This document shows, piece after piece, positions 7,043-22,029 of a stretch of 64,000 nucleotides of DNA. The notes under the pieces are model-generated. The model saw only the letters and a program-made list of their open reading frames with translations, had not been told where the DNA came from and searched no databases. Location: the sequence record LT960552.1; one strand, written 5' to 3'. The position numbers and the translations under genes were made by a program. How positions within the stretch are numbered: the stretch's first letter is position 1; every line of letters starts with the position of its first letter.

Positions 7043-7156
7043 GCAGTGATCGTCTAGAGGCTTAGGACACGAAAAGCGATTCTTGATTAAGAATCTTACG
7101 GCATCCACAACTTTCATTCAACGAACGTAACGCAGGTTCGAATCCTGCTCACTGCA
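7043..7156 (+). ncRNA. CAGCA-module element 1: Glu-type tRNA body with anticodon arm replaced by module
   Basis: GCAGTGA/TCACTGC acceptor, D arm GTCTAGAGGCTTAGGAC, T arm GCAGG-TTCGAAT-CCTGC; insert GATTCTT..AAGAATC-TTACGGCAT. Confidence 0.8.
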
Positions 7157-7865: not shown

Positions 7866-7991
7866 GTGGGGTTAGCTCAGTTTGGTAGAGCAGCGAAAGA
7901 AACCAAAATGGAATCTTGAAAAGGATTCTAACAGCATTATATCTTCTACTGTAAATTCGCGGGTCGGTGTGTTCAAATCCACCACCCCACA
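7866..7991 (+). ncRNA. CAGCA-module element 2: tRNA interrupted by 51-nt module insert (GTA loop retained)
   Basis: GTGGGGT/ACCCCAC acceptor; GCGAA-[insert 7898-7948]-CTGTAAA-TTCGC; insert has GAATC..GATTC stem then TAACAGCAT. Confidence 0.85.
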
Positions 7992-8875: not shown

Positions 8876-8996
8876 GGCGAGTTAGCTCAGTGGTAGAGCA
8901 CGTAGAAACCAAGGATTCTAGTACTAGATTCCCGCAGCAACAATAACTCATACTATGATAAAGTCGTGGTCGGGGGTTCAAATCCCTCACTCGCCG
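8876..8996 (+). ncRNA. CAGCA-module element 3: tRNA body with anticodon arm replaced by module
   Basis: GGCGAGT/ACTCGCC acceptor, canonical D and T arms; insert GGATTCTAG..CTAGATTCC-CGCAGCAA. Confidence 0.85.
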
Positions 8997-20173: not shown

Positions 20174-20500
20174 ATGTTAAACAAAGAAAAATATATTACT
20201 GTAAAAAATACTTGGAAATTAGAAAAAGAGCATAACATTTTCGACCATGTGGTTTATAATGTTATTCGTGGCCTACCATCAGATAATGGGTTTGCACCAA
20301 TTACTGATAAAGGAAAACTTCAAGCAAATAATAACGACCCGTATAATATGTACAACTATGCAGTTCTTGAATTGCATTATGAGTTGAATGAAAAACGATA
20401 CAATTATGAAAAAACAGTACAACATTATTCTAAACTATTTGGCATTGAATTTACACCTGAACTTATCGAAGTAGTACTTACTTTGATTAAAGTTAAATAA
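20174..20500 (+). CDS. hypothetical protein
   Basis: AAGGA SD. Confidence 0.7.
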   Translation: MLNKEKYITVKNTWKLEKEHNIFDHVVYNVIRGLPSDNGFAPITDKGKLQANNNDPYNMYNYAVLELHYELNEKRYNYEKTVQHYSKLFGIEFTPELIEVVLTLIKVK

Positions 20501-20508
20501 CAGAATTA

Positions 20509-20572
20509 AAGAATCCAACAGCACCCATAAATGAAATCAACTGTTAATTGAAAAATTCAAAAATGGATTCTT
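20509..20572 (+). ncRNA. CAGCA-module element 14: isolated Asn(GTT) anticodon stem-loop cargo
   Basis: AAGAATCC-AACAGCAC..TGAA..TCAA-CTGTTAA-TTGA..TTCA..GGATTCTT. Confidence 0.85.
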
Positions 20573-20646
20573 GTTTTTATTTGGAAGTCTCATGAAAGAT
20601 AATTTTTATGAAGATTTAAGATTTAGATATATTGAAGTACATGAAT

Positions 20647-20676
20647 TTGACGTTATAGCACTGAACGTGCTATAAT
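20647..20676 (+). promoter_or_regulatory. sigma70-like promoter with internal 9-bp inverted repeat
   Basis: TTGACG-N17-TATAAT; TTATAGCAC-N5-GTGCTATAA. Confidence 0.7.
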
Positions 20677-20680
20677 AGCT

Positions 20681-20754
20681 GGAGCCGTAGTTCAGTTGGT
20701 TAGAACGCTTGCCTGTCACGCAAGAGGCCGTGGGTTCAAGTCCCATCGGTTCCG
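20681..20754 (+). tRNA. tRNA-Asp(GTC)
   Basis: CTTGC-CTGTCAC-GCAAG, G73. Confidence 0.95.
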
Positions 20755-20771
20755 CAAAAATAAGGAAAATT

Positions 20772-21035
20772 ATGAACAAGAAAGCAAAAACACGTATTTT
20801 TAATACTGTTATAGAAACGTCACCAGACCATTGTAAATACAATTTTTGGTATCATAATATGCTTAGAAAAACAATTTTACTTATGTCTAAGGGTAAGTAT
20901 CGTAAAACTGAAAAAGAAATTATACAAATACTTACTCGAAATCATGGTAAAAAACGATATAATCCTACACCAGAAGAACATGATGAAATGGTTCGTTTAG
21001 AACAAAGTGTTGGTCTAATGTGTGGTGTTAAATAA
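20772..21035 (+). CDS. hypothetical basic protein
   Basis: AAGGA SD before ATG. Confidence 0.65.
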   Translation: MNKKAKTRIFNTVIETSPDHCKYNFWYHNMLRKTILLMSKGKYRKTEKEIIQILTRNHGKKRYNPTPEEHDEMVRLEQSVGLMCGVK

Positions 21036-21038
21036 ATT

Positions 21039-21390
21039 GGTAATAAAGAGTGTAAGGGTTAGTACTTAGTATCATATTCCCCCTCTACCTTCTTCCCCCA
21101 TTATTTGGGTTCTAGTCGTAGACACAATGTAGTACTTTATTACCCGCGAATTAATATTTTATTGTGGGGTGGTAAGAGTAAGATACCGATTCAAACAAGG
21201 GTCAGAAAGATCCACTTAACCCGTTTTGAAACAATAAAATATCCCGAAAGGGTGACGATGTGAATAGTGCATATCCTTGTAGTATGGGACAGTACTACAT
21301 TTTTATAAATAAATTGGAATAGAGCATGAGACTGCCCTCACTATTCGACGCTTTAAGTAGCTTTCTAGAGAGTACTTTCGGGTACTCACC
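21039..21390 (+). ncRNA. large structured non-coding region (one or two RNAs), unknown family
   Basis: 10-bp, 12-bp and 8-bp long-range stems, GAAA and TTCG tetraloop hairpins, no ORF. Confidence 0.7.
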
Positions 21391-21407
21391 CAAATAAAAT
21401 AAAACAT

Positions 21408-21480
21408 GTTCTTATAGCTCAATTGGATAGAGTTGCCGCCTACGAAGCGGTCGATATAGGTTCAAATCCTTTTAGGAACA
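21408..21480 (+). tRNA. tRNA-Arg(ACG)
   Basis: GCCGC-CTACGAA-GCGGT. Confidence 0.9.
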
Positions 21481-21500
21481 CAAAATTAAGGTAATTAAAG

Positions 21501-21731
21501 ATGAAATCACTAGTAGCTATGGTAAAAGACAAAAAAGTCTATTTTAGCCATTATCAAAACAATGAACTATGGTACAGTACTGAATGCGGATTTATGTTTC
21601 CGGTTCCGGTATCTGATACTGGTAATGCAGAATTTAAAAATGAAGATAAAGCTACGTTCTTTATGCGTTGGATTCGGAAACATCTTGAAATGATTGCTGA
21701 TGAAAGTCAATCACAATCAGTTAATGGATGA
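21501..21731 (+). CDS. hypothetical protein
   Basis: ORF track. Confidence 0.7.
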   Translation: MKSLVAMVKDKKVYFSHYQNNELWYSTECGFMFPVPVSDTGNAEFKNEDKATFFMRWIRKHLEMIADESQSQSVNG

Positions 21732-22029
21732 TTTGAAAATTATACATGATGTATTAAATGTGTACTACACCACTGGTGAAGATGCTCTACATTATGGCAA
21801 CGTATATTATGAGTACTGGATGCGACAATGCACCTTTATGGGAACTGGCTTTAACTTTACGGATGAATACATTCAGTTTGGTGAAACACGTTCCGATATA
21901 GATAAAGTACTTGATGAAGAATCACATTTTCAATTAAGTACTGTGTATAATTTCTACGACCTAACGTTCGAAGATATTACAGCACTTAAAGAAATCTATA
22001 TATTCAAACGCGGGGAACCTACACCATAG
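21724..22029 (+). CDS. hypothetical protein, EEQHFQ-motif family
   Basis: DEESHFQL motif; TAG stop inside a terminator hairpin. Confidence 0.65.
   Translation: MDDLKIIHDVLNVYYTTGEDALHYGNVYYEYWMRQCTFMGTGFNFTDEYIQFGETRSDIDKVLDEESHFQLSTVYNFYDLTFEDITALKEIYIFKRGEPTP

Follow-up and report, generated by a model that had tools for sequence, protein, structure and literature searches.

A modular, structured RNA region with a conserved three-way junction in the tRNA array of the Yersinia jumbo phage fHe-Yen9-03

The spacer between gene g458 and tRNA-Arg(ACG) in the tRNA array of the Yersinia jumbo phage fHe-Yen9-03 is a structured RNA region that is real, under selection and not yet catalogued; its build is modular and its distribution narrow. 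Comparison with related phages shows that two of its parts, here called domains A and C, contain conserved helices that are read in the + strand sense, and that the spacer as a whole is made up of modules. No other part of the locus, the flanking tRNAs and the coding genes included, is as well conserved as domains A and C.

We analysed a window of 64 kb, the terminal part of the genome of fHe-Yen9-03 (LT960552.1, 352.6 kb, genus Eneladusvirus). The spacer is 372 nt long (21036-21407 of the window, corresponding to 309632-310003 of the record), is unannotated and lies within a 31-kb array of 23-27 tRNA genes and small hypothetical genes, which is on the + strand throughout. Upstream, a predicted sigma-70-type promoter (20647-20676, + strand; TTGACG, 18 nt and TATAAT with TG; 11 of 12 consensus matches) directly precedes tRNA-Asp(GTC) (20681-20754, + strand), the first gene of the presumed transcription unit, and is the nearest promoter predicted ahead of the spacer. 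This tRNA is followed by g458 (20772-21035, + strand), which according to its annotation and to sequence and model analyses encodes a basic, helical protein of 87 aa. No Pfam family covers this protein, which falls into a PHROG without assigned function and gave no atlas lead; its model (pLDDT 75) had no Foldseek match at E<=0.001. The stop codon of g458 ends 3 nt ahead of helix P1 of domain A; in Pectobacterium phage CBB and in the metagenome locus L021 it overlaps P1. At its other end, the spacer runs out into an A/U-rich, G-free and single-stranded leader of 20 nt (21388-21407, + strand), which leads into tRNA-Arg(ACG) (21408-21481, + strand). This tRNA has no promoter of its own and is without the extended -10 promoter found at many other tRNAs of the array. 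Distant homologues of g459 in RsoM2USA and XacN1 have no adjoining tRNAs. After g457, a long hairpin formed by AAGAATCCA ... TGGATTCTT with an ACAGCAC word (20510-20600) precedes a T run and probably represents the final member of an ACAGCAA-type family; it looks like the terminator of the preceding unit. Elsewhere in the window, three tRNA-like genes of 114-126 nt (7043-7156, 7866-7991 and 8876-8996) are annotated as pseudo or undetermined.

A sequence-only reading of this DNA had described 21039-21390 as a densely structured non-coding region. Its non-coding nature is borne out: the sole ORF of at least 40 aa that touches the spacer (21105-21263, TTG start) spans an insertion missing in relatives, and neither the ORF list nor the alignments contain a conserved reading frame across the spacer. 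All six complementary pairs on which the description was based are present. GGTAATAAAG (21039-48) and CTTTATTACC (21135-44) are complementary at 10 of 10 positions, ATATTTTATTGT (21154-65) and ACAATAAAATAT (21231-42) at 12 of 12, and GAATAGTG (21262-69) and CACTATTC (21339-46) at 8 of 8; CCC-GAAA-GGG forms a hairpin at 21243-52, TGTAGTA (21278-84) pairs with TACTACA (21293-99), and GAGTACT-TTCG-GGTACTC is found at 21370-87. Two perfect stems of at least 10 nt within 130 nt were observed, compared with a mean of 0.05 in 1000 dinucleotide shuffles, one of which reached two. The folding energy of the whole stretch was weakly unusual (+ strand, z = -1.76; - strand, z = -2.03), and single domains gave z values of -1.2 to -2.5 against shuffles. 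Because folding energy is weakly unusual, the real support for structure is comparative. No hexamer of the window is more over-represented than AGTACT, which occurs 205 times where base composition predicts 21.6 (9.5-fold); it is often extended to CAGTACTG, and four copies lie in the spacer (21061, 21131, 21291 and 21371). Since this hexamer is palindromic, it supplies ready-made stems and inflates apparent hairpin richness.

We compared the slot between the g458 homologue and tRNA-Arg in Yen9-04, Serratia BF, six Erwinia pEa_SNUABM phages, Pectobacterium CBB and Cronobacter GAP32, and added the metagenome contig L021, a new diverged relative. Spacer length ranged from 78 nt in GAP32 and 184 nt in CBB to 372 nt in Yen9-03, 411 nt in the BF group and 499 nt in Yen9-04. 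In the alignments, blocks were either present and nearly identical or wholly absent. Block C (21243 to about 21318) occurs in all relatives and is the sole universal domain. Block A (21036-21153) is absent from GAP32, block B (21154-21242) is limited to Yen9-03, Yen9-04 and one wastewater relative, and blocks D (about 21317-21362) and F (21370-21387) are confined to Eneladusvirus. Block E, of 127 nt, is found in every Eneladusvirus compared except Yen9-03. Contigs from two wastewater runs represent one relative that skips 21149-21242, and thus B, but has E, and another with both B and E. Every block is closed by its own terminal stem, and since each is present or absent as a unit, the spacer is a chain of domains rather than a single 350-nt fold. 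Where the sequence-only reading had expected one or two ncRNAs, we thus find five to six separately closed domains that come and go among near-identical phages.

The lineage-specific domains differ in how much the alignments say about them. Domain B is an 89-nt, single-copy insertion with a perfect 12-bp closing stem (21154-21242, + strand); it shows no sequence variation, and its fold is a predicted one. Domain D (21317-21362, + strand) is delimited by fold and alignments and consists of a hairpin (21317-22/21341-46) with inner pairs (21327-30/21337-40), in which an A-to-G change in SNU47 retains the stem as G·U. It ends with the 17-nt word CGACGCTTTAAGTAGCT (21346-62), a second copy of which follows E in relatives (L002 1437-1453). 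As E is flanked by these two copies, the sequence indicates that Yen9-03 probably lost E by deletion between direct repeats. A 53-aa ORF of Yen9-04, g454 (L002 1291-1452), lies inside domains D and E, is deleted in Yen9-03 and is unannotated in the BF group; it is probably not a real gene. Domain F (21370-21387, + strand), a 7-bp hairpin with a UUCG loop, is the final stable hairpin ahead of the tRNA. An 11-nt word, AAATAAATTGG, stands both before A (21030-21040) and before D (21307-21317), and D and the final hairpin of E share their flanks, with TTGG before and CGACGC after. These shared flanks suggest that the spacer grew as stem-closed units were duplicated in tandem.

All eight lineages examined have a stable hairpin 15-21 nt ahead of tRNA-Arg +1, with an A/U-rich tail behind it. 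The hairpin comes in three unrelated kinds: F in Yen9-03, H3 of domain C in Mimasvirus and another one in Xanthomonas XbC2 and Erwinia Kaldavass. We also considered a hairpin about 20 nt before the tRNA as an array-wide rule and rejected it, as it holds for the tRNA-Arg slot only. XbC2 (L007 990-1147) and Kaldavass (L008 880-1129) carry a different set of tetraloop hairpins in this slot, which the two share and whose last hairpin shows a compensated change; the CCCGAAAGGGTG start of domain C is present in Kaldavass as well. The slot ahead of tRNA-Arg thus seems to attract structured RNA of several kinds.

The spacer domains are known from about a dozen genomes, namely Yersinia, Serratia, Erwinia and Pectobacterium phages and wastewater relatives. 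A metagenome scan for relatives yielded one true new one, L021; a pattern search of IMG/VR returned only the reference phages and chance matches within unrelated genes, and all seven matches in a GTDB genome search were due to chance. Copy number was assessed by blastn-short against the window, by BLAST of B and of the D-E-F stretch of Yen9-04 against five phage genomes, and with the domain A CM against five genomes. Each domain was single in every genome searched, with otherwise chance-level hits. A miniature, MITE-like mobile element was rejected on the basis of this single copy of each domain per genome.

The evidence for selection on structure is concentrated in domains A and C. Domain A is an RNA of about 106 nt with a three-way junction (21039-21144, + strand), for which a consensus structure was derived from seven distinct sequences. 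It is closed by P1 (21039-48/21135-44) and contains P2 (21084-88/21118-22), P3 (21097-100/21106-09) and P4 (21056-58/21079-81), the last with an inner hairpin (21062-65/21069-72). All 26 pairs are kept in all seven sequences, so that 182 of 182 pair cells are standard, and five of the 26 pairs show double compensatory changes. None of 500 shuffles matched this result, and sliding the partners by 1-3 columns gave 0-1 such pairs. In P2, for example, UCUAC/GUAGA is replaced by UCUGC/GCAGA or UCUGU/ACAGA. P4 and its inner hairpin are invariant among the seven sequences, and covariation is silent on both. Little or no change is seen at positions 21049-21083, in the junction CC or at the 3' junction ends; the terminal loops and the internal loop between P2 and P3 are variable. 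The domain A CM had one match per genome in Yen9-03 and CBB and also matched the metagenome locus L021.

Domain C (21243-21299, + strand) was delimited by alignments and by pairing across relatives, in which 97% of its cells are paired. It comprises three hairpins: H1, CCC-GAAA-GGG (21243-52); H2 (21257-62/21270-75), with the invariant loop AAUAGUG; and H3 (21278-85/21292-99), in which two pairs show double changes. In H1 and H2, the changes preserve pairing as G·U or G-C on the + strand; in one Erwinia phage, a single closing pair is broken. The G·U pairs of A and C arise only when the + strand is read, implying an RNA read in the direction of the tRNA genes. The compensatory changes in the helices of A and C bear out the earlier description of the region as structured RNA; they come from three diverged lineages (Eneladusvirus, CBB and L021), the remaining sequences being near-identical.

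The complementarity between GAATAGTG and CACTATTC is real, but it competes with two local hairpins, H2 (21257-75) and that of domain D (21317-46). The full-length fold prefers the local hairpins, and single-base changes in relatives fit them. The GAATAGTG arm is the loop of H2 and is conserved even where D is absent; the CACTATTC arm is the 3' strand of hairpin D. Three further perfect long-range complements join the 3' edge of domain A to the 3' strand of H3 (21126-21136/21291-21301, 11 nt), the P3 loop to the tRNA leader (21101-21110/21388-21397, 10 nt) and H1 to the loop of F (21243-21250/21375-21382, 8 nt). We did not accept these three as helices, since changes in the BF group weaken them and are not compensated.

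The conservation of the core was set against that of its neighbours. Relative to the BF group, A is 94% and C 99-100% identical, compared with 90-95% for the coding genes and 66-69% for tRNA-Asp and tRNA-Arg. Relative to CBB, identity is 89% for A, 80% for C, 76% for g459 and 66% for tRNA-Arg, and the g458 protein is about 30% identical between genera. In one wastewater relative, g458 carries 24 substitutions and 21036-21363 is free of them. Blocks of 100% identity stand side by side with blocks of 64-88% in this mosaic locus, and recent exchange rather than constraint could explain part of the high identity of the spacer. The tRNA genes differ by many compensated stem changes, indicating lineages old enough for stem turnover, and the 5' half of A is unchanged although the tRNA stems have turned over. 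In the loci compared (L004, L005, L006 and L021), tRNA-Asp and tRNA-Arg of the Yersinia phages are 66-69% identical to those of the BF group, with flanks at 90-100%; these two tRNAs have either been replaced in place or are evolving very fast.

The mosaic raises the question whether the spacer has a function of its own. It might be a recombination-prone stretch that gathers duplicated hairpins, selfish cassettes or decayed RNA relics and looks conserved through recent exchange, a reading that we regard as improbable. Apart from the mosaic itself, it would account for indels bounded by direct repeats (the 17-nt word around E, and AAATAAATTGG at 21030 and 21307), for the resemblance of D and the last E hairpin to duplicates and for the different hairpin sets that XbC2 and Kaldavass carry in the tRNA-Arg slot, and the genome-wide excess of the AGTACT palindrome would provide stems ready-made. 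However, double compensatory changes in five pairs of A and two of C, with no pair of A broken, require selection on pairing. Moreover, A and C are 80-89% identical across genera, compared with about 30% for the g458 protein and 66% for the tRNAs at the DNA level. The domains are not repeated in the genomes searched and hence are not multi-copy mobile elements, and no tRNA remnant was found at E<=10.

The explanation that we favour, and to which we give somewhat better than even chances, is that the + strand transcript of the tRNA operon includes the spacer as a string of RNA domains, each folding on its own, which tRNA processing sets free, with a core that is recognised by its shape. A scan of the + strand of 21036-21407 found no promoter-like site, so the spacer is most likely transcribed from the strong promoter predicted before tRNA-Asp. 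A single transcript would then comprise tRNA-Asp, g458, A-B-C-D-F, tRNA-Arg and g459 onward. RNase P cleaves at tRNA +1, and a cut at the 5' end of tRNA-Arg would free the spacer with a 20-nt A/U tail, which exonucleases could trim back to the last hairpin. The occurrence of a hairpin 15-21 nt ahead of tRNA-Arg in all eight lineages fits a 3' protective hairpin. The spacer would persist either as the structured 372-nt 3' end of a short g458 message or as excised small RNAs. Contigs from a single run labelled RNA-Seq cover only parts of tRNAs and 21345-21471, and this run is probably DNA.

The selected core would consist of domain A, with its three-way junction, and the three hairpins of domain C, and B, D, E and F would be dispensable additions that arose by insertion or duplication of stem-closed units; for B and E, dispensability is already evident from the natural variants that lack them. 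In domain A, junction and internal loops are invariant and terminal loops and helices change with compensation, which points to recognition of its shape by a protein or a small ligand; an invariant junction with compensating helices is not the pattern of a base-pairing regulator. We infer from these patterns that the spacer RNA is co-transcribed, processed and stable and has a partner that recognises its shape. A bolder version is possible but speculative: domain A may be the RNA half of an undescribed, aptamer-like phage RNA-protein or RNA-ligand pair, kept near letter for letter across two genera, and the spacer may be a cassette array of stem-closed small RNAs cut from the tRNA operon by the tRNA-processing enzymes of the host.

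We find it unlikely that the spacer is instead a cis-regulatory switch, in which domain A would sense a ligand, a protein or the terminating ribosome and domain C, by means of H3 and its U run, would gate the RNA of tRNA-Arg and g459-g462 by termination or processing. Domain A is aptamer-like in its closing P1, invariant three-way-junction bases and variable loops, and a ribosome terminating on g458 should open P1, given the 0-3 nt between this helix and the stop codon. In Yen9-03, TTTTT comes after H3, whose 3' strand (21291-301) has a perfect 11-nt complement (21126-36) at the 3' edge of A. Yet a scan for intrinsic terminators found no site in 20400-21900 and no canonical terminator in the spacer, H3 is short and A/U-rich, the U run after it is missing in GAP32 and L021, and the complementarity between A and H3 has two uncompensated mismatches in the BF group. 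The spacing also argues against such a switch: the 89-nt domain B lies between A and C in Yen9-03, 90-220 nt (D, E and F) separate C from the tRNA, and GAP32 has C without A. None of the Rfam riboswitch classes matched the spacer or its counterparts in five relatives at E<=10. Nor is an expression platform conserved, with no terminator found, a variable U run after H3 and B standing between A and C.

An element that acts as DNA, for example one that binds a protein, serves replication or recombination or works as a phage-specific promoter, is still harder to reconcile with the data, and we consider it very unlikely. The invariant runs (21049-21083 and most of 21243-21275) do exceed the needs of simple hairpins, and our promoter scan is blind to phage-specific polymerases or sigma factors. 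The helices, however, covary over long distances and contain G·U on the + strand only, which on the opposite strand become A·C mismatches. GAAA and UUCG loops are RNA motifs, and the region is oriented like all of the genes that flank it.

The sequence-only reading had also pointed to an exposed C/U-rich tract that could pair with Shine-Dalgarno sequences. Most of this tract (21077-21099) is in helices: C21079-81 form the 3' strand of P4, TCTAC (21084-88) the 5' strand of P2 and CCCA (21097-100) the 5' strand of P3. It is exposed only at C21082-83 and in the 8-nt internal-loop strand CTTCTTCC (21089-96), and this unpaired linker differs by lineage (CUUCUU, UUUCAU, CAUCUU and UAUCUU). The tract is pyrimidine-rich, its 8-nt part is predicted to be unpaired, and UACCUU of Yen9-03 can pair with AAGGUA of the g459 ribosome site. 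However, duplexes of the linker with the ribosome sites of g458 and g459 were weak (-2.6 to -7.1 kcal/mol) and no better with the phage's own sites than with swapped partners, and antisense pairing of the spacer with E. coli rRNAs showed no excess. With the conserved C runs and UCUAC taken up by helices P4, P2 and P3 of the covarying domain A, a linker that is different in every lineage and no cognate preference, we rejected a C/U-rich anti-Shine-Dalgarno small RNA, for which there is no conserved unpaired seed and, among the neighbouring genes, pairing with ribosome sites only at chance level, and a trans-acting RNA that blocks translation in this way has hardly any credibility left.

Our favoured reading of a chain of processed RNA domains with a shape-recognised core bears on how such arrays are viewed. 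The tRNA arrays of jumbo phages are usually annotated as tRNAs and small hypothetical genes, and here the most conserved sequence of the locus belongs to neither class: it is an RNA that folds around a fixed junction. Provided that this RNA is expressed and has a binding partner, the structured RNAs encoded by phages, still few in number, would gain a new family. Stable structured RNAs in phage tRNA operons are of a kind already known, and the family in this spacer is uncatalogued. The spacer also illustrates an evolution in which stem-closed units are gained and are deleted between direct repeats, and if the cassette array is true, phage small RNAs could be made without promoters or terminators of their own. 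The reach of these conclusions is that of a narrow family of about a dozen genomes.

The region was compared with known RNA families and with systems that resemble it in part. At the Rfam 15 gathering score, only tRNAs passed in the window, and at E<=10 nothing was found inside 21036-21407 or in the homologous spacers of five relatives. ARAGORN detected no tRNA or tmRNA in the spacer, and RF00005 had no match there at E<=10. The earlier inference that any RNA encoded here would be novel has held up in these searches. An rRNA mimic was rejected, as local alignment to E. coli 16S, 23S and 5S stayed within the range of shuffles (z <= 1.7) in this sequence-level test.

Y-RNA-like tRNA mimics (YrlA and the ACAGCAA module) share some traits with the spacer: the ACAGCAA units lie in the same array on the + strand, and A/U-rich terminal helices close their units as well. 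Unlike these, the spacer has no ACAGCAA, no T-arm-like element, no YrlA match (E<=10) and no similarity elsewhere in the window. An RNA of this type was rejected, since the word occurs 16 times in the window and never in 21036-21407, which has no tRNA-like part. Arbiol et al. in 2010 reportedly described the promoter-early stem-loops (PeSLs) of T4-type phages, cassettes through which genes are shuffled. The spacer resembles PeSLs as a mosaic region of conserved intergenic hairpins with fast-changing small genes on its flanks; unlike PeSLs, which have many near-identical copies per genome and carry a promoter, its domains are single-copy and contain no promoter-like site. Tuerk et al. in 1988 are said to have described stable tetraloop hairpins in T4 intercistronic regions. 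Like these and like the 3'-protective hairpins of bacteria, the spacer has UUCG and GAAA hairpins in a presumably transcribed position, the last one 15-21 nt before the RNase P site; such a model covers F, H1 and H3 at most and leaves the unvarying A junction and H2 loop unexplained.

Further parallels are to rnaC and rnaD of T4 (species 1 and 2 RNAs) and to riboswitch aptamers. The T4 RNAs are small and stable and lie beside tRNA-Arg in a phage tRNA cluster on the same strand; their function is likewise not assigned, and the genes around them are of other kinds. Unlike the spacer domains, rnaC and rnaD are downstream of tRNA-Arg, and rnaC has a tRNA-like T arm, whereas the spacer domains are without any tRNA-like part. 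A direct relationship was rejected, as the domain A model had no match to the T4 locus at E<=10. Although domain A follows a coding gene and precedes a tRNA instead of forming a 5' leader, matches no Rfam family and has no conserved expression platform, it resembles three-way-junction riboswitch aptamers, for example that for purine, in its comparable size, its closing P1, its conserved junction, its variable loops and its covarying stems.
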